Positions 25,701 to 37,700 of a stretch of 64,000 nucleotides of DNA are shown here, in pieces. The DNA is from Saccostrea echinata (taxonomy: Eukaryota). Where the stretch lies: positions 1,612,001-1,676,000 of the forward strand of contig NW_026889765.1 in assembly GCF_033153115.1 (NCBI RefSeq). The letters are read 5' to 3'. The first letter of the stretch is position 1. Each line of letters begins with the position of its first letter. The notes under the pieces are model-generated. The model saw nothing but the letters and a program-made list of their open reading frames with translations, made no database searches and was not told where the DNA came from. A program made the translations under genes and the position numbers.

Positions 25701-28700
25701 CTGTCCTTTGTTGTTTTCAAGTTAGCTACATCAAATGCAAGCTTTCATTGACGTCAAGTTTATTTGACTTTTTCAAATGCACAACAGATGTTTTGAGAAT
25801 TCTACGGTGAACCGTACGTGCATGAAATGCACGCATGTAACATTTTCATTGTGTTACCCATTGTCAAGTCTGTTGCTAATGCTGAGGGTAACATTACGGA
25901 TCATTAACTGCATCTAAACCAATCAGATTTTAGTATTTAACATGAAAGTATAATAATAGTTAATGTTTCACTCTGATCAGATTTAAGGAGTGTAGAGAGT
26001 GGAGAGTCTGACGTTTATAATGCTACGCACAACCTCTTGCTTCTGTTGTATGAGAGGGACTGTAGACGGCCATACGCTGAAAAGGATCATTGGCTCAACA
26101 GGTCAGTTCACAGGAAATAAAAAGCACAAAATAAATGTTACCCAAAATTTTCCCAATGAATTTCATGCAGGAAAAAAACACTTACGTGAATCTGACATGA
26201 AAGTTTTTTTTTAATTTGTTTCAAACTTTATGCGAGTTTTTAGCAAAAAATCTATTCATTTGAAATTTCACTGCTGCACAATTAGTTGTGTGTAGCAGTA
26301 AAGCATTTTTGAAAAAAAAAAGTTAGCCCTTTCAATCAATATTACCAAACTCTTTAGATTTTCTTCAGTGCTCTAAGTCTGATTAGTGGAGAAAGTGCAA
26401 TCTGGAGTTATTCTTATATGTAATGTTGTTTTTATTTGGTTGCAGAGACATCAAACCTAGTGCATTCCTTAAAGATTCTGACAGAGACAGAGCTATGGAG
26501 GTGCTGGTGAAGAAAACTCCTTTTATCATTCCATTTGCAGAGGTAATGCAATGAGGAGGTCTAAAAATTCTTGATACATTCAACAATTGTCTTGATGAAT
26601 CTTTAGTTTTGCTTACTCAGGTCATTTTTATTTTGTTTTTAGATGATATTTAAACAGATGAATTTTGCTACCTTATGAATTGCTATGTATTGGCATATGC
26701 TCTATTTGTATTGCCCTAATTTCAAATTGAGATTCATAAGAGAATTTGCTGGTGTTATTATATGAATATGTTTAAAGTTACAAAGAACGGTATTTCCCAG
26801 AGTATGTTTTAAATTAGCTGAGCACCATCTTTAATTTTTTGAGAAATTTTGAAAGCTTAACCCATTTCTGATTACTTGTAGAGAGTGAAGGCCTTCAGAC
26901 ATAGAGTACGGCTGGAAAAGGAGAGTCTGGGATTGACAGAATCAGCGGCCATTTCTCCTCAGTCCACACTCATCACCGTCCACAGAAATAGGGTTGTGGA
27001 GGTCAGTACTGGGTCTTGTGAAGGATTTATACAAACATAGTAGACAAGTGAACCACAGCAAATAATTTACCAAACACAGAAATTAGAGACTGTTGTAGTT
27101 ACATCGTGATATTGTACATTTCCCATGTAGCACCACAGGAGTCTGAAGTTTTTATTGTTAAAAAATAGTGGGGAAAAAAAATTCACCCTCTACTAGAAGG
27201 GTGGAATATTTTTTTTCTGGTATTTTTTTATGACACGCCATGAATATGGCCGGGGCATATAGTGTTTGTCATCTCCGTCCTTCCATCCTTCCATCTGTCC
27301 TTCCGTCGCACTTTGCGTTTAGCTCAGTTCAAAGCTCAGTTTAAAAGAAACTCTCCAAGATATTTTTATCACACTTCATATGCTGGTAGTCTATTTCTAA
27401 TACAAAACAAAGTATGGTATTTCAAATGTCTTTATCTAATAACATTCCAGCATATGCATAGTTCAAGAGTTCTTTATCTTACAACATTATTGCAAATATG
27501 AACAACAAATAAGACAACTAAAAATTATTTACATTACAAATTCAAATACACAATACTGGACAAAACTGGCTCAGTCACCCATGAAGAACTTGCTGGACTG
27601 AAGAATCCACATGGTAGAATCTTCCCGATGTGTGAGACATCGCCACAACGAAAATTGTTGAACCCAGCAAGACAGAGTTGGAAGATCCACATGGTAGAAA
27701 TTCCCCAGTACGAGTGTACTGCTGCAATAAAAATTTGTAAACTCTGCTCTAGAATTTTAACAACAAGGAAGTTTTAGCTGATTATAAATTTGTAATGGGG
27801 AAATTATGACAATAATAAGGCCAAAACTCAGGAACGAAAATATGAGTGACTGAGTGCCCCGTAAGTGTTTATAATTGTTCGCTATGGTAATACATACATG
27901 TTAATTATGAGATAAATTGAAAATGAGAACAAGATTTTTTAACTGTGAAAAAAGAAAAATATTACAAATAACATGTCTATAGATTGCGACATAGTAAGCC
28001 GTTTTATACAAGAAGAATATAACAACATGATAGCGACACAAGAAATACAAAGCAAGGTATAAACGATACAAAAATTGAATGAGAGCATAAAAATTAATCT
28101 GTAATCAGGAAACATTAAGTTTAAAAATATTGAGAATTACACACTATGTACACATTCACAATGGTGCCCGAGTCATCAGACTGTTAAACAATGCTTTTAG
28201 AATCTCTCGCAAAAGTCAACTGGTGATGAGCATGGACTGTTGCGTGTGTTTAATGGCTGAGTCTGGTGTTTTGATATATCTCGTATATGAATTGGAGGTC
28301 CATCTTCCTAGTGATTTGATAAGGTGGTCTTCGATGCGCGCTTTTGCTGCAGATGTAGCAGCACCAATTTGGAAAGAATGACCAGTGATGTAGCTGTCGC
28401 AGTGGTTTGAACGCTTCAGTAGATCCCTTAACATAGTCAAAAAATTACACCGACTGAGGGCAGATCCATTTTCCATGATGAACAGGGGGAGGTGCATTTT
28501 GGGATCAAAAATGGCATTTCTTGTAGATAAGTAGTTCTTTAGTTGTTCAAATGGACATAATACGGAATTATTTTTGAACAACTTGATCCCTAATCCTTTT
28601 CGGAAAGGATCAGTCTTGGATTGTTTAAGGAAGAGAACGACGTGGTCATTGTAGAATTGTACGTCGCTTATGCACAGATTAAAGTGAGGGTCGAAAGCTG

Positions 28701-31700
28701 CTTTGCATGTAAATTCTGCACATCTGAGGAAACCGAAAAAAGCCACTACACACACTGTTGTCATCAATGTATCCGTGTATTTTGAGTTCACACCTTTTTG
28801 AAGCACGCTGCACATGTCTTGTAACACATTGTAAGTAATAGGTTTCGGCTTGGATGGTAGGATTGACTTTGTCTTTTTATACCGCTAAGTAGCATGTGCA
28901 ATCTAGGTAGATTACCTGCCAAATCGGTGAAGGGGTTAGGTATACCTAGCAGGATGAGATGGTGTCGAATCCCGCAGAGGTAAAGTTTGATTGTTTGGTA
29001 AGACAGGTTCATGGAATCGTAACAGTAGGTGACAAATTCCATTAAAGTAGATTCTGACACACTTTGACACGTGTTGTTCATACGGCTAAATTTTAAGAAG
29101 GCTTGATATCCGGAGTTGTACGTAGCTCTAGTTGAAATGGATATGGAGTCTTCCATCAATGCTTCTATTCTGTGAGAGGTTTCCAAAGGACGTCCTGCAG
29201 GGGTGGGCAAGGATGAGGGTGTCTGTCTGCTTGAGGAGCTAGGCTTCTGAACTTGTTTATCTGAAATCGAGAGAAAGCATCTGCGATTACATTAGTTTTA
29301 CCTGGAAGGAATTCAGAATAAATGCAGAAATTGTATTTAGCTGAACACCAGGTTAACTGTCTCATTAGTTTCATAATAGAAAGAACTTTAGATCGCCCCT
29401 TTTGTATAATATTCACAGTAGCTAAGTTGTCACAATAAAAAAGTATTCTTTTGGTAGACCAACGAAGTCCCCAGAGAATGGAAGCTACAACGATAGGGTA
29501 CAGTTCATGGAGTGCCATGGATATGTCCTTGTCTTGTTCACTTGGTAAATCATCTGGCCATTTGTCACTGAACCAGTGACCTTTGAAATATCCCCCGAAT
29601 CCAAGGGTAGATGATGCGTCTGTATACAAATGCATACTATTAGCTGGAGTTCTTTCGATATCATAGAAAAATGATATGCCATTCCACTGATCTAAGAACA
29701 ATTTCCACATTTTGATGTCTTCTCTGCACTCTGAGGTCAGATGAATGTAATGGTGAAGCTCGCGCACAGAAGATGCTAGGCTCAACAAATAAGAAACAAA
29801 TGATCTTCCTGGTACGATTACGCGAGAAGCAAAGTTCAGATGTCCCAAAAGTTGCAACAATTCACGTTTTGTACAGCTTTTCTTCACGCTGAAAGTTTCC
29901 AACATTTCTCGTATTCTAAGAACTTTATCTGGAGGAAGTCATGCTTGCATTTTAGAAGAATCGAGAATTATTCCAAGGTATTCCATAACAGTATCTGGGC
30001 CCATGGTCTTGTGTAGAGCAATTGGAACGTTCAGCTTCTTAAAGATCATTGTCAGGAGGGCCATAGTCCGCTCCGCATCAAAATCTGGTCTATCTATGGT
30101 TAGGAAGTCATCCAGCAAATGCGTATAGATTCGATTTTGTAATTGTTTTGTGCTATCCAGCAAATTGCTTGGGAAAACTGATCGAAGATCTTTGGACTAG
30201 ATCTACATCCAAAGGATAAACGAGTGTAGTAATAGTATAAATTTCTCCACTTCACACAATATAAATGGTACTGAGAAGGTAGTATGGGAATAAGTTTAAA
30301 GGCATCTGAAATATCAGTCTTGCACATCAGAGAGCCTTGACCATTTTGCACAATAATTTTGATGGCATCATCAATACTCACATAAGAAAGAGAGCATTGA
30401 TTTTTATCAATGAGTTCATTTATACTTGGGTGAGTTTCATTGTTGTGAGGTGCAGAAAGATCCACGATTAGCCTTTTCTTTTTAGAATACTTATGTTCGG
30501 CGATTCCGAGAGGAGACACTCTGTAGTTTTCAAAAGGAGGTTCCTCATAAGGTCCTGAAAGAAAACCTTTTTCAATTTCCTTTGACAGCAACTCATCAAC
30601 AGTATCCATGTTCTGTAAAGCTGACCTCAAGTTTTTGCATTCTCATGTTTTCAAGTCTGTTTTCTGCACTTTAGTGTCAAACCCATTAGTAAAACCATCT
30701 AGAATGTAAGCAACAAAGTTAGGATTTTCAAGATTTTCAAGTTCTAGTTTCAACTGTTGAATGTTAATTGTTGAGCATGGAGATCCTGGAACAGATAGTC
30801 ATTTGGGATTGGTAGTAGAGGAAGATGTATTCTTAGTTTTGGTGAATTTTGAATTGCAAGTGAGCGATGAATGATCCTTTTTCTTGCATTGGCTACAAAT
30901 ATGAAGGAAAGGACAGTTGTTTCTTCCGCATTTCCTAGTAGAATTGAAATTGTTACAGATTTCCTGTCCATCGTGTAACAGCCTCTTTCTGCCATGCTTA
31001 TCTGTATTACTGTTTGAGGATTGATGAGAAGTCGTTGCTGAATTGCTCTGTGATTGAGGACAAAACCTAGTGTCATGAGAAACTTCTGAGCAGATAGAGC
31101 AGGATCTGGATTTAGATGCTACGAGTTGAATGAGATCTCTGTCTCTCACAGACCAGTCGACTTTAATCTTGTGAACGGCCAAGGCATTGGCACTTCTCAG
31201 AGAAAATAGCTTGTGGTACTCATAAAATCTTTTTCCGTAAACATTGTATATGTCGATGATATTGGCTTCATACTGATCTAATTCTTCTCTGCGATTAGGA
31301 AATGCCTGACACATGCATCGTTTATATTTTCCGAATGCGGTTAAAAACTCAGCAATAGTAAGGCACCTTTTAAGTCGGATATCTTCCTTCTCTGGTTTCT
31401 CTTTCTCTGAGGTAGTAATTTCGTAATAAGGAAGAAGCAATGTAGCAAGATTAACATCCTTACCGTCGATGATGTTTTTCCGAATGGAATTGGAAATCAA
31501 TTCCATTTGGGGCAATTCCTCCGGGTTCGTGCCTAATTTCCTCATGCTCTGGGTGTTTTCATTTGCCGTTTGGTAGAACTGCTGTAGAACTGCTGTAAAT
31601 TAAATGATGGCGAGCTGTTAGCGTTTGTGTCTTTCGTTGTAATAAGGGTAGTTAAACTCGAAACCATCGTCTGGAGGCTTTGAACTGTGTGCACAAGCGA

Positions 31701-34700
31701 CTCGATAACTGCTGGGGAACTCGAGGTAGCTGAACTTTGGTTTCCGCCGGAAGTAGTTGCACTTGGATAAGTCGTACTTGGAAAGGATGTCGTACTAGCT
31801 ACGGATACTGCAGACGAACTTTGGAGATTCAAAGATTGTCTGGAAAAACCATTTGTGTGGTCGAAATTCTCCGCGGAATTCACATCGATGGCCCTGCTTT
31901 CATTTTGACTGTTTGAAGCGTCAATATCTTTTCCCAACACATTGTCCACGTACAATTTCCGCAACACAGAGATAGGAAAATTGGAAGAGGCGCTTATATT
32001 AGCCTCTAACAGTTTTTCTCGTAGAACAACAGCGGACCAATTTAAATAATTTGTGGTGTCAAGAGAATCACCGGAGGTTCTTTGTCTTTTAGCACTTCTC
32101 CTGGTCGCCATTGTTGTTTTGAGATACGTTGATTTATAATATCGCAATTTCACTAATTAATGAAGTGTTTTTCCCAGAATTACATCGTCAAAAACACAAT
32201 TTAAGTACTCTGAAAGTAAATACACAAACAAACAAATCGGATGATCGATGATTATTAAGTAATCCTATGGATTAATGAAGACAATAATAGCTTGGTACTG
32301 ACACTGTCCGGGACCATCGAAAGATAAGAAATCATGTGACTAGCTATTCTTGACCTATTGACCAATGACTGATGGACACGAAAATCAGCATGTCTATTGC
32401 ATAATATTGGTAAACGTAAACAAAAGCAAAGGGGGGAAGGGCTTAGTTAGGCAAATTGTATGAAATAAACTTTGCTTAAAATTTTAATAAAATAATTTAA
32501 GCTACAAATATTGATGAGAGCTATGCAACTGCATCAAGATTTTTTGACCTTGACCTTTCCTTTGACCTTGACCTCACTTTTCTTAAATTAGTGTTTAGCT
32601 CAGTTTTAAAGAAACCATTCAGGATAATGTTATCAAACTTCATATGCTGATACATACTGATGTAGGCTACTCAACTGCATCAAGATTTTTTGACCTTGAC
32701 CTTTCCTTTGACCTTGGCCTCACTTTTCTTAAATTAGTGTCTAACTTCATTTGCTGAAACATACTGATGTAAGCTATTCAACTGCATCAACATTTTTTAC
32801 CTTGACCTTTCATTTGACCTTGACCATACTTCTCTCAATTTGTGTTTAACTCAGTTTTAAAGAAACCACTCATAATATTTTTATCAAACTTCATATGTTA
32901 ATACGTACTGATGTAAGCTTTTCAACTGCTGCATCAACATTTTTTGACCTTGTCCTTGACCTTTCGTCTTTCCTTTGACCATAACTTCATTCATTTTAAG
33001 TTAATGTTTAGCTCTGTTTTAAATAAACCATTCAAAATATTTTTATCAAACTTAATATGCTGATACGTATTTGTGAGAACTATTCAACTGCATCAAAAAT
33101 GTTTGACTTTGAACTTTCCTGTGACCTTGACCTCACAAAATTTGCATTTTGCTGTGTTTTAAAGAAATCATTTAAGATATATTTATGTAAGCTTATGCAC
33201 TTGTACATAATTTGGTGAGAATTTATCATCTATATCCAACTTTTTAGATTTCAATTTTAAAGAAACTATTCAAGATGTTCTCATCAAATTTCATACACTA
33301 ATACAAATTTTTATGTTGCATTACTAATATACCCTCGACGGGGCATTCATGTCCTCTGGACATATTTCTAATTTTACAATAAAAACCAACTCCTGTGGTA
33401 GCACAGGAAAAACAAAATAATATTTCATTTAGATTTAACACTGGCTTTAGATTATCAAAGCAAATTCTTTTTAACATAACAAATTAGTTAAGTCACAGTC
33501 AATACTATAATATTTTTTCCCCCTGATATTAAGGATGGCTATAGACAATTGGCTCAGATTCCTGCCCAGTCCTTGAAGGGAGTGATCCGTGTTAAGTTTG
33601 TCAATGAACAAGGTCTGGATGAAGCAGGGATTGATCAAGATGGTGTCTTTAAGGAGTTTCTGGAGGAAACTATATCTAAAGTGTTTGATCCTTCACTCAG
33701 TCTCTTTAAGGTATTTTACTAATTATGTTAAGTGTTTAAAAGTACCAGTGTCATTGTGTGTGTATGTTCTTGTTTTGTTTTGTTTTGTTTTTTTTTGCAT
33801 TAAATTGAATTTTTTTTTTTGAAGATTTATATCATTCTATTTTCATTTTAAAATAGGATATTTTCCCATTTGCATCAGGTAAACTTTTGTCACAGACATT
33901 TACTCAATAGAAAACAATTTTAATTGAATACATTTATAAACATATTCTTTTAGGTCACTACAGAACAAAAGTTATTTCCTTCGTCAACCTCTTTTATTCA
34001 AGAAAACCATCTTCACTTGTTTGATTTTGTGGGGAAAATGTTGGCAAAAGCTGTGTATGAGGTGAGAAAGATATTTAAAAGAACATCATAAAACTTTGGA
34101 CTTTCTGTAGATAATTTGACTTTCAATATTACGTATTATTCTTCCTTGTTTATTAGGGTATAGTTGTGGACGTGCCTTTTGCTCCATTTTTCTTGACTCA
34201 GATCCTTCAGCACCACCAGAGCACATTGTACAGTCCTCTAGATGAACTGCCTTCCTTAGATCCAGAGCTAGCAAAGAATCTATCTTATACCAAGGTAATC
34301 ATGTTTGGCTCAAGAGAATATATCTGAATAAAGGTCTAATGGACTTTGTAAACTTTTAACATCCAGATCTACTGGACCACTTTTGATCTTTGGGCTTAAG
34401 GGGATTCTGATTTGTTTGTATGAAATAAGAATAAGTGGAGAGAGAGTCATTAAATTTTTTTCTGCCAACTCACAGAGTAGGAAAAGACAAAACATATGTA
34501 AATAACTTTATCATTTAATATAGACTTATTTTTATTAGTCATAGTTTTGTAGGAATAAGTAGGATATACCGGATAATGGAAATTTTCCTCCCATCAGAAC
34601 ATGTAAGGCTGCACTGTGAAAGCATCCCCATATATATGTAGTGTGTTTGTTTAAGTAAGTCAAGACCCCCTCAGCAGGGATAGGGCCATAAAAAGATCTA

Positions 34701-37700
34701 AATCTACACGGCGATATATATACATGTCTATATATATGTAGGAGAGTTTAAAAAGATTTCCCTCTGCAGAACGGTAGGTTGGTTATGAAGAGTAATATTA
34801 ATAGCAGGCATCCCTGTATACTGCAGAATAAATTTGTTCAAGTCATGATCTTCTGAAGCTAGGATGGACCACTGTTGGGTTTCAGTTTTTTAAAACCTCT
34901 GAAATATAGAGGAAATTATTAATGAAAGAAATCTATTCTACCTATATTCTGCTATAATTAGTCAAGTTGGATGAAACCATTGTCATAGAGTGCAGTTTCA
35001 ATTTTCTCCTGCAAGAAAATGGAACCAAAACAGGGGGTTCAAAGTCTTATAGAAGTATATAAATAATTGTTTGAAAATTGTTCTCCAGAACAGCAAATGC
35101 GGAAGTAGCAAAAGAAAATGCCAGCATTCCCATACATACTCAAGTTTGTTTTAAGTTTTGATGGTTGGGTCACAATATTAAGGATTCATGCTTGTATATA
35201 AATATACAAAAGGAATTGAATGAAAATTCTTCAATATTTTTCTTCTGAAGAACAGCTTAACTGTAATGATCGTATTTGTGTGAATTTATCCTCATTATGG
35301 CTTAAAGGTTTACAATGGCATTCATAGGGCAAACTTGATTGAGAAATTTTCTCTTAATTGGTGATGTTGTGTAGATTCAAACTTGCAAGAGTTCATAACA
35401 CTAGGGTCAAAGGGGGAGGAGTTATGCTTAATTTTATGCCTTCCATGAATATGACTTGGACAAGTAGTGTTTATCATGTCTATCTTCTTCCTCCTGTCCT
35501 TGCATCTGTCCATCAATCACACTGCTTTTATCTCAGTTTCTAAGAAGCAGTTCAAGGTATATTAACTGACACTCTTACACTGAGCTATGGCATAATTTTC
35601 TGACCTTGACCTTCCCTGTGATCTTGACTTTATTATTCCCCATTTTTCAAGATATTTTATCAAAACTCATACACTGATACATAAAATGGGAACTTTCCAA
35701 CTGTGTTCATTATTTTCTGACCTTGACCTTCCCTGTGACCTTTACTTTTTTGTATTTAGCTCAATTTCAAAGTAACTATTAAAGATATTTTTATCAAGAC
35801 TCATACACTGATACATATTGGTGGGAGCTATTGAAGTATGTCATAATTTCTGACCTTGTCATTCCCTATAACCTTGACCTCAGAGTCTCTATTCCTTATT
35901 TTACATTTAACTTATTTTCAAGGAAATGATTCCTGATATTAATGTCAAACTTCACACAAATATAAAAATTGATGAAAGATATTCAACTGTGTCAGAATTT
36001 TCGGACCTTACCTTGTCCTGTGACCTTGACCTCACCATTAATCACCAAAGGCTCAATGAGCTAATGCTATGGTCATTTGTGCGATGTTAGATGTGTGTTA
36101 ACTTTTTTGAATGTGGACCTATACCAAGAACCCCATGACCAATTTTTATCAAATTTGTCACAAAGTATCCTTGGCCCAAGGGCTTTCAGTTATACAAAAA
36201 TAGGGATCTGACCCTTAAACAAGAGGAAATAATGAGGGAAATAAACACAGAAGTAGTGGTTGGTAAAAATAATCTTCTCCTCATGGGGCAAGTTATCACC
36301 AACTTATGTATATGGATGAGTATATGAAGCAGATAAAAAAATATTCAAAGTTGTCATTAAGTATCCTTGGCCCAAGGGCTTTCAGTTATACTAAAAATAG
36401 GGATGTGACCCTTAAACAAGAGGAGATAATGAGGGAAATAAACACAAAAGTAGTGGTTGCTAAAAAAATCTTCTCATGGGGCAGGTTACCACCAACTTGT
36501 ATAGATGAATGAGGATATGAAGTAGATTAAAAACTTTCCAAAGCATGACCCTGGGGCAAAGGGCATGATCCCAAGGTCACTTCAAAGTTGACCTAAAGTA
36601 ATAATTTGTTAAAACTTCAACATTTTACCTCACTATAAGGCATAGGATCATCAATTCTTGTCAGTTGATGCATCTTAGGTTGGAATACGTTGACCAAAAA
36701 GTAGGTCACAGTGACCTTCTATCAATTTTATCATCATTCATTGTCAAATTCTTTGCATATCTTGGACATGGTAGCATAAGATCATTGAACTTTGTAATTT
36801 AATGCATTTTGGTTCTCAGGGTCTGATGATGAAAAAGTAGTTCATAGTGACCTACTTTCTGAATTTTATGGCTATTAATTTTCAAAGCATTTTAGCTAAA
36901 TATTTGGATATCAACTAACTAAAAATCATCACACCTTTTCAGTTAATACATCTTAGGGCCTTGGGGTAACTAAAAAGTAAATCACTGTGACTTACTTTCT
37001 TAATCAGTGCTCAGTTTACATACTTGTGTATATAGCAGGGTCTAAACTCCAGGTTCAATTCTCTCCTGACTACACCCTATTTCACCTATAATCCTTATAA
37101 TCGTTTTCTAGCAGAAAATGCTCCCAAAGAGCACTTAAATTAAAAACATTTTTATTCTCAATGTTCTCAATATGACAAGCAAAAATAGAGATATTTTGAT
37201 AAAAAAAACAAATATACTCGGAAAAAAATCACATTTGGAGAACTATTTAATATATTTAACAATGTGGCACTCTCCCTTTCCATCATCCCCTTGTCCCACC
37301 CACAGTTTTCCCTCTCTGTCCAGACATACTCCCCTGGGGCTCTGTAAGCCATATTTGTCACTAAGAAGATTCATCAGAAATTTGCCATCTTTATCCAGAA
37401 GCAACACAGAATTGTTCCCAAAGTCAGAGAGAATAATGTTCATCAAAGAATCACAGCAAACACTTCTAGGGAAAAAGAATTGTTTAGTCTCCTCCAGACC
37501 TTTGAATTTCCACTGGAGTGTTCCTTTAGTGTCTATGGCAGTGACATAGTGAGTTTGGAGGTGGTCGTCTAGGACAATGTAGTTTTCATCACCATTTTGA
37601 GCTACTCGATTGGGAGCATTGAGAAGATGGTTGGCAATATCTCTGCTATTTTGGTACTTGTCCCCAAAGTAAATTCTTAGACTACCAGTCAATCCTGAGA

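Follow-up and report, generated by a model that had tools for sequence, protein, structure and literature searches.

Introduction

Tyrosine-recombinase retrotransposons are the least understood order of retroelements, and the role of their split repeats has only been modelled (PMC7192593, PMC6681497). The primer for reverse transcription in the DIRS order is unsolved (PMC7192593). Ngaro elements are defined by the layout A1-[ORFs]-B1A2B2, where ORFs are the open reading frames (PMC8547959; PMC6681497). This study concerns a 64,000-nucleotide stretch of the Saccostrea echinata genome (contig NW_026889765.1, positions 1,612,001 to 1,676,000 of the forward strand; here referred to as the window, and numbered from its first letter), whose minus strand carries a Ngaro-like retrotransposon copy with a folded module at 27570-27854 in its 3' tail. 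As in described Ngaro-like retrotransposons, there are ORFs for a Gag-like protein, reverse transcriptase (RT)/RNase H and a tyrosine recombinase, no target-site duplication, and the order A1...B1-A2-B2 (PMC8547959). The present element differs in that A2 and B2 are parted by 88 bp of linker, in which a C-rich motif is conserved; moreover, the repeats are described merely as repeats in the open-access papers found. The preliminary description of this DNA had stated that no such RNA module was known in DIRS/Ngaro elements, and none is described in the open-access literature searched: no account of a folded module, of a conserved TTGGGG...CCCCAA helix or of hairpin arrays within repeat B was found there, the original Goodwin and Poulter Ngaro papers lying outside that scope.

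Folded elements of comparable build are known from other viruses and retroelements. The 3' untranslated regions (UTRs) of flaviviruses contain tandem paralogous units of ~80 nt with several helices each, namely, the dumbbells DB1/DB2 and xrRNA1/2, in which identical cores are combined with differing paired stems. The module resembles these duplicated structures in having tandem ~80-nt multi-helix units in a 3' tail; it differs in giving no sequence or covariance-model match, in its retrotransposon host and in having no evident exonuclease-stalling pseudoknot. With retroviral packaging signals and the constitutive transport element it shares several hairpins or internal loops with repeated motifs, as well as a zinc-knuckle Gag protein, a putative binder, encoded in the same element, but it is situated in the 3' repeat rather than in a 5' leader. 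A third group comprises stringent-type long interspersed nuclear elements (LINEs), the R2 3' UTR, hepadnavirus epsilon and the retron msr-msd, in which a family-specific folded RNA near the 3' region of the template selects that template for its own RT. The module differs from this group in being 180-460 nt from the element end and in showing no inferable branching-G context, bulge-templated primer or multicopy single-stranded DNA (msDNA). In the retron, flanking inverted repeats also close the structured region; this flanking inverted repeat is the only retron feature seen in the module, and the G run is found on the 5' side of the arm instead of the 3' side.

To characterize the module, its folding was compared with shuffled controls, its two paralogous units were aligned, and the 3' regions of related families were examined for the same architecture. 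Judged from sequence, the module probably serves the element as a signal in its copying or packaging.

Results and discussion

Folding of the module and compensating changes

All stems named in the preliminary description are present in the window at the positions given there. The 285-nt region 27570-27854 was folded on both strands against 200 dinucleotide shuffles, and its energy is distinguishable from, and far below, that of the controls: the minus strand reaches -83.0 kcal/mol (shuffles -59.4 +/- 4.5; z -5.23; 0/200 as good) and the plus strand -77.4 kcal/mol (z -5.34). The 13-bp outer stem that had been proposed to enclose both units and a third stem domain was reproduced in the minimum free energy (MFE) fold, in which 27854-27842 pair with 27582-27570. 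Its 5' arm, CTCAGTCACTCAT (27842-27854, minus strand), is preceded by GGGGCA (27860-27855), and its 3' arm, ATGGGTGACTGAG (27570-27582, minus strand), which was recovered both by the MFE fold and by arm shuffling, lies within repeat B; the duplex of the two arms has an energy of -28 kcal/mol (z -4.25). The third stem domain (27769-27829, minus strand) belongs to the same global MFE fold. When the span is limited, an alternative is obtained in which GGGG (27860-27857) pairs with CCCC (27800-27797) and CTCAG with CTGAG (27831-27827), and this two-hairpin GGGG...CCCC layout is also present in four related families (L021, L029, L034, and L022). No other 160-nt window of the element folds at so low an energy as the module (-49 versus at most -37 kcal/mol); in this sliding scan, with windows mis-framed on the module, its z of -3.4 was equalled by four coding windows (z < -3).

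Two paralogous units are enclosed by the outer stem. Unit 1 (27589-27671, minus strand, 83 nt) has a closing stem of 9-11 bp and three arms, and folds at -29.9 kcal/mol (z -4.17). A four-way junction had been proposed for both units. It was found in unit 1; unit 2 of the window copy (27673-27746, minus strand) forms a three-way junction only (-21.3 kcal/mol, z -3.7), because its first arm carries several mutations. This arm is intact in the other genomic copies, where unit 2 does form a four-way junction, and in the copy on chromosome 25 the junction is perfect (-27.2 kcal/mol, z -6.0).

By sequence match and unit alignment, the 15-nt core TTCTACCATGTGGAT is identical in the two units and occurs exactly twice in the window, at 27605-27619 in unit 1 and at 27685-27699 in unit 2 (both minus strand), where it folds into TCTAC-CAT-GTGGA, a hairpin with a single U-G pair. 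It is not the single invariant hairpin that had been assumed, as the first arm, ACAAYTTTCGTTGT, is near-identical as well, so that two hairpins are conserved. The second of these is ACAATTTTCGTTGT in unit 1 (27645-27658, minus strand) and ACAACTTTCGTTGT in unit 2 of the chromosome-25 copy, with the first arms reading ACAAT-TTTC-GTTGT and ACAAC-TTTC-GTTGT, respectively. The remaining helices differ in sequence and still pair: in the second arm, four of the six pairs differ between the units, with both sides changed and all still Watson-Crick; at the base of the third arm two pairs differ in the same manner; and the closing stems are different in sequence and fully paired. In a MAFFT alignment of eight unit sequences, which amount to essentially two independent sequences, 93.9% of the cells pair, and sliding the partners lowers this to 27-50%. 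Change on both sides is seen at five pairs, and covariation scores 0.260, compared to 0.151 +/- 0.022 after shuffling (0/500). The proposal that selection acts on a folded single strand, drawn from stems that change in compensation while the cores stay fixed, is thereby supported and, with the same logic found in related families (see below), strengthened. Within the 923 Mb genome, the 13-nt hairpin core is clustered only in copies of the host element; its 16 other matches are unrelated single sites, compared to 8 matches for the control.

A long-range helix and hairpin arrays in related families

The genome contains hundreds of related elements, of which the nearest other recombinase families are 43-51% identical to that of the window element, and scans of metagenomes, viruses and prokaryote genomes gave relatives at 53% identity or less. 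The 3' regions of these families share no alignable sequence with the module, yet they have the same build. A TTGGGG(G)C(A)CTCAG-like motif occurs 10-700 nt after the recombinase stop codon and, as a 5' arm (TTGGGG.CACTCAG-like), pairs with a 3' arm, in most cases ending in CCCCAA, that is situated 160-680 nt further downstream; the motif GGGGCACTCAG of the window 5' arm is kept in other families at the same position. The inner bases of the helix are family-specific and co-vary, being TCACTCAT/ATGgGTGA in the window family, CTATTATA/TATAATAG in L029, TTGCTATTT/AAATAGCA in L090, CAGCTTC/GAAGCTG in L021, and CAGCTTTGC/GCAAGCTG in L111.

The helix was evaluated in 18 families from the same genome and from metagenome contigs by shuffling the 5' arm 40 times in each. 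Arm shuffling was chosen in view of the conserved part of the 5' arm, which pairs with every family and makes a matrix of cognate versus non-cognate arms noisy. Ten of the 18 families reached z <= -3, with 0-1 of the 40 shuffles as good; of the remainder, five had z values of -1.8 to -2.6, one had -1.95, and two showed nothing. The linker before B2 could be read in three families, and in all of them it contains a further arm, different from the first, that can pair with the same 3' arm, namely, TCAGTCACC pairing with GGTGACTGA of the 3' arm over 9 bp in the window family (linker of the chromosome-25 copy), GGTAACT/AGTTACC over 7 bp in L029, and 14 bp including two sense-strand G-U pairs in L012. 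Because the linker holds this second arm, both copies of B can be closed off. By these comparisons, the outer stem of the module is part of a predicted helix conserved across the clade.

Hairpin arrays are a further recurring trait. In the L012/L021 family, the units are built on a two-strand motif, TTCCGGCTCTTGT with ACACCGAGTT, which is present in both orders around variable stems. In L029, each B copy contains seven GGCC-ATC-GGCC hairpins; L111 has thirteen GGC-TTCC-GCC hairpins, and L090 repeats AGTCG-GTACGCT-CGACT hairpins. L022 shows a ~80-nt period with three hairpins that have a TTAC loop in common on the stems TGTGC/GCACA, AGTAC/GTACT, and GGTAC/GTACC, and the covariation of this array (N5-TTAC-N5') is 0.456 compared to 0.206 in shuffled controls (0/500). 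When arrays were counted strictly, i.e., as perfect 4-bp stems with identical loop and closing pair in three or more copies, 20 of the 81 loci had one, versus a shuffle mean of about 1.1. In L012, L021, and L111, the opposite strand of the repeated cores, TTCCGGC and GGCTTCCGCC, reads CCGGAA/CGGAAGC, which resembles an ETS-type site.

Where the loop stays constant and the stems vary but remain complementary, a hairpin in a single strand is indicated, not a double-stranded protein site. An action of the repeats in duplex DNA, as transcription factor sites in an enhancer-like array or as accessory recombinase sites with incidental folds, is therefore considered very improbable. Tandem short motifs in a terminal repeat do recall the enhancer repeats of retroviruses, the cores of L012 and L111 are ETS-like when read on the other strand (CCGGAAG/CGGAAGC), and CATGTG occurs within the window core. 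However, such sites are expected to have fixed half-sites and a free spacer, while here it is the loop that is constant, on stems that vary and remain complementary; in addition, arms 160-680 nt apart co-vary, and the G-U pairs are strand-specific.

The same comparisons bear on an absence of function, in which tandem duplication and palindromes would have arisen by template switching during reverse transcription and then drifted neutrally. Tandem repeats are common in the tails of retroelements, the number of units varies (three in L012, four in L021), and the window copy is already without one arm; such a loss, however, is expected of any dead integrated copy whether or not the module had a function. 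Neutral drift does not readily account for five to six two-sided compensating changes beside blocks of 14-15 nt that are identical or near-identical, nor for an architecture with a co-varying outer helix in families from several sources whose recombinases are only 36-53% identical, and this explanation is held to be improbable.

Host element and split direct repeats

The host element is a Ngaro-type tyrosine-recombinase retrotransposon. The window copy (27392-32511, minus strand, 5.1 kb) was delimited with three other genomic copies on other chromosomes (96-98% identity; four copies in total) and with junction reads, and no target-site duplication was seen at the junctions examined. It codes for a Gag-like ORF, RT, an RNase H-like region and a tyrosine recombinase, its reading frames being interrupted in this copy. 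Pfam searches of the minus-strand ORFs returned RVT_1 (E 3e-6), Phage_integrase and SAM-like domains, and a pattern search found two CCHC zinc knuckles and one CCCH finger in the Gag-like ORF. There was no Pfam match to a methyltransferase domain in the host element, and the distance from RT start to recombinase stop, only about 2.4 kb, leaves no room for one, which sets DIRS-like and PAT-like elements apart. Besides RT/RNase H and tyrosine recombinase, the Ngaro arrangement of split direct repeats was found in the chromosome-25 copy. About 700 relatives of the recombinase were collected, including oyster, mussel and scallop proteins; the closest are oyster proteins at 63-78% identity, among which are proteins of Crassostrea angulata (e.g., XP_052678597.1 and XP_052720977.1), C. 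gigas, and C. virginica (e.g., XP_022333550).

Repeat A (A1, 32287-32507, minus strand) recurs in the chromosome-25 copy directly after B1 as A2 (221 bp, 99.5% identical), followed by the 88-bp linker and B2 (433 bp, 99.1%), the second copy of repeat B (B1, 27392-27824, minus strand). The window copy and two others stop at B1, which is consistent with recombination between B1 and B2. Repeat B opens with TGGCC (27824), and both units and the 3' arm of the outer helix are inside it, whereas the 5' arm is just upstream and outside; in the L012 family, B likewise starts at the homologous TGGCC. At its other end, repeat B finishes in AGAAATA(AA), which resembles a polyadenylation signal. Since B ends in AGAAATAAA, any full transcript would have the module in its 3' tail. 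The B1-A2 joint of the chromosome-25 copy reads ...AGAAATAAA|TTGTAGC. Pairing between the 5' region of the element and repeat B was also assessed, and no duplex above shuffles was found.

Some features of the repeat ends and the linker are shared with other families. Repeat A opens with TTGTAG in the window family (32511-32505) and in L029, and with TGGAGGC in L012; repeat B ends in ATAAA in all three, i.e., in the window family (27400-27392), in L029 (downstream ~870) and in L012. The linker between A2 and B2 of the chromosome-25 copy (L006:7259-7345) has a C-rich motif, with a purine-rich complement, that is kept across four families: CCACCACCATCCCCGCC in the window family, CCACCTTCCTCCCCACCACC in L029, CCACCATCCACCCCGCC in L031, and CCGCCACCACCCCACCAC in L012 (L148:~945-972).

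These boundaries also bear on the identity of the 285-nt segment itself. The tRNA likeness noted for the units goes no further than size and shape, as ARAGORN detected no tRNA gene in 26000-29000. An Rfam search of the module, with models for ribozymes, the transport element, xrRNA, dumbbell and enterovirus cloverleaf among others, gave no relevant match to a described family, even at E<=10: the best matches were bacterial small RNA models at 18-20 bits versus thresholds of 44-90, and no tRNA or tRNA-like structure (TLS) family appeared at E<=10. For ten related loci, zero matches were obtained at the gathering threshold. An unrelated nested insertion, which had been named as a possible refutation, was not found either; the module matches five places genome-wide, all inside copies of the host element. 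A nested miniature inverted-repeat transposable element (MITE) bounded by the 13-bp inverted repeats was accordingly rejected, given the lack of independent copies and a repeat B that begins inside the segment and not at its ends. A length of 74-83 nt, a four-way junction and inverted ends would suit tRNA-derived or tRNA-like units (a primer mimic or a fragment of a short interspersed nuclear element, SINE) or such a MITE. In view of the above results, and of a 5' arm that is kept at the same position in other families, both identities are so improbable that they can practically be set aside.

Strand preference and the possibility of folded cDNA

The preference for the minus strand that had been read from the G-U pairs was borne out for this element and not as a general rule. 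Here the sense strand folds slightly better: the difference is 5.6 kcal/mol for 27570-27854 and 9.7 kcal/mol for a domain of 313 nt that extends a little further. Its advantage comes from a G-U in each of four helices (core hairpin, first arm, closing stem, and outer stem), which on the other strand would be a C-A mismatch. Across the related families the preference is mixed. For the window element, RNA is more likely than complementary DNA (cDNA) to be the folded strand.

Hairpin origins are known from single-stranded phages and plasmids, and integron attC is a folded substrate of a tyrosine recombinase. In analogy, single-stranded cDNA might be the folded form of the module, taking part in B1/B2 annealing and template switching, acting as second-strand origin, or serving as recombinase substrate, which is a serious possibility, albeit on balance an unlikely one. 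The intermediates of DIRS-1 are linear single-stranded cDNA (PMC7192593), and the Ngaro/PAT model needs annealing between repeat portions (PMC6681497), with the module being located inside repeat B. The placement of the 5' arm just outside B and the 3' arm inside, together with a linker that gives B2 an arm of its own, would suit such a scheme. Furthermore, the antisense fold is much the better one in three families. The antisense loops read GGAA in L111 and GTAA in L022. On the other hand, the sense-strand G-U pairs, including those of the invariant hairpin and the outer stem, would turn into C-A mismatches in first-strand cDNA, and the 14-bp linker arm of L012 needs its two G-U pairs of the sense strand.

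The internal complementary region of DIRS-1 and integron attC also resemble the module in being non-coding parts of tyrosine-recombinase mobile DNA with intramolecular single-strand pairing. Unlike the DIRS-1 region, the module is not complementary to the element termini, which counts against folded cDNA as well; a DIRS-type internal complementary region was rejected, as a comparison of the module with the outermost 80 nt at either end of the element gave no complementary word of >=9 nt. It differs from attC in that the sense strand is favoured and no attC-type boxes or extrahelical bases were identified, no attC model having been applied; the first arm, with its AAC...GTT, is only weakly similar.

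A candidate recognition platform for element-encoded proteins

Four observations, namely, the fold, the two-sided changes that preserve pairing, the same build in related families, and the location in repeat B, underlie the explanation that is put forward here, tentatively and at somewhat less than even confidence: selection would have maintained the module as a folded cis-acting domain of the 3' untranslated tail, functioning as a family-specific, multivalent RNA platform for the proteins of the element. The long-range helix would close a compartment holding the two paralogous ~80-nt four-way junctions, each of which would display the same two small hairpins. As part of the sense-strand genomic RNA, the module would be recognized by the Gag-like protein with its two CCHC and one CCCH fingers and/or by RT, and binding would mark the RNA for packaging and for choice as reverse-transcription template. 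RNA as the active form, the binding protein and the step served are thus all assigned conditionally, with the Gag-like zinc-knuckle protein as the first candidate binder and RT as the next. Because the motifs differ between families within one host genome, and are present in two to a dozen or more copies, a multivalent target of an element-encoded protein is suggested.

This difference between families fits an element-encoded protein better than a shared host factor. A structured RNA that recruits host factors, either as an export or stability element like the constitutive transport element or as an exonuclease-resistant 3' UTR structure, would agree with the location in the 3' tail upstream of the AATAAA-like end, with conserved modules duplicated in tandem, and with the two-strand internal-loop motif of L012, which occurs in both orientations like the two loops of the transport element. 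However, motifs that are wholly different between families of one host genome are unexpected for a conserved host protein, and no Rfam family matches; recruitment of host factors is hence regarded as decidedly unlikely.

By analogy with the RT scaffolds of hepadnavirus epsilon and retron msr, the module and the TTGGGG...CCCCAA helix might alternatively constitute the origin of reverse transcription or, in cDNA, a folded site for the recombinase or for second-strand synthesis. Such a role is seen as unlikely; if true, it would answer how elements of the DIRS order start and complete DNA synthesis.

Several observations weigh against the proposal of a recognition platform. Within the family, covariation rests on the two paralogous units, the four copies being uninformative at 96-98% identity. 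The hairpin arrays are recurrent, not universal, and that of L022 is outside the closed compartment. As for the strand, nine of 15 families favour sense and three favour antisense by >20 kcal/mol, and the counts of G-U versus A-C in the hairpin arrays are balanced.

Whichever molecule is folded, concrete cis-elements that are conserved and co-vary have been located in or next to repeat B, namely, the helix with the G-rich arm, the second arm in the linker, and the family-specific sets of hairpins, and these represent defined targets for mutational, probing and binding work. The module could also define a new RNA family for annotating such elements in molluscs and other marine invertebrates.

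Other observations on the element copies

In the coding part of the window copy, 28452-28691, 28852-29011, and 30292-30451 (minus strand; recombinase and RT regions) have folding z values of about -3 to -3.7 in the sliding scan. The copy sits within a tandem repeat of ~105 bp: its flanks at 32597-33136 and 27333-27388 match each other, and further copies of the repeat are found upstream at ~35686-36035. On chromosome 9, the copy has a ~1.3-kb insertion upstream of the module in the 3' tail (L008:5145-6438) with terminal inverted repeats (CAGGGATGGGGTGA.../...TGACCCCATCCCTG) and ~8 bp of the element duplicated on either side, which is probably a DNA transposon or a MITE. The RT region of the chromosome-29 copy (L007:3867-4503) is rearranged, with ~70 bp of window sequence gone and ~580 bp of other sequence present. 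Lastly, metagenome-assembled 'genomes' labelled Sedimenticola and Candidatus Thiodiazotropha (L144-L147, protein P0019) hold recombinases of these animal retrotransposons, and the presence of the latter in symbiont bins is most likely the result of contamination with host DNA.

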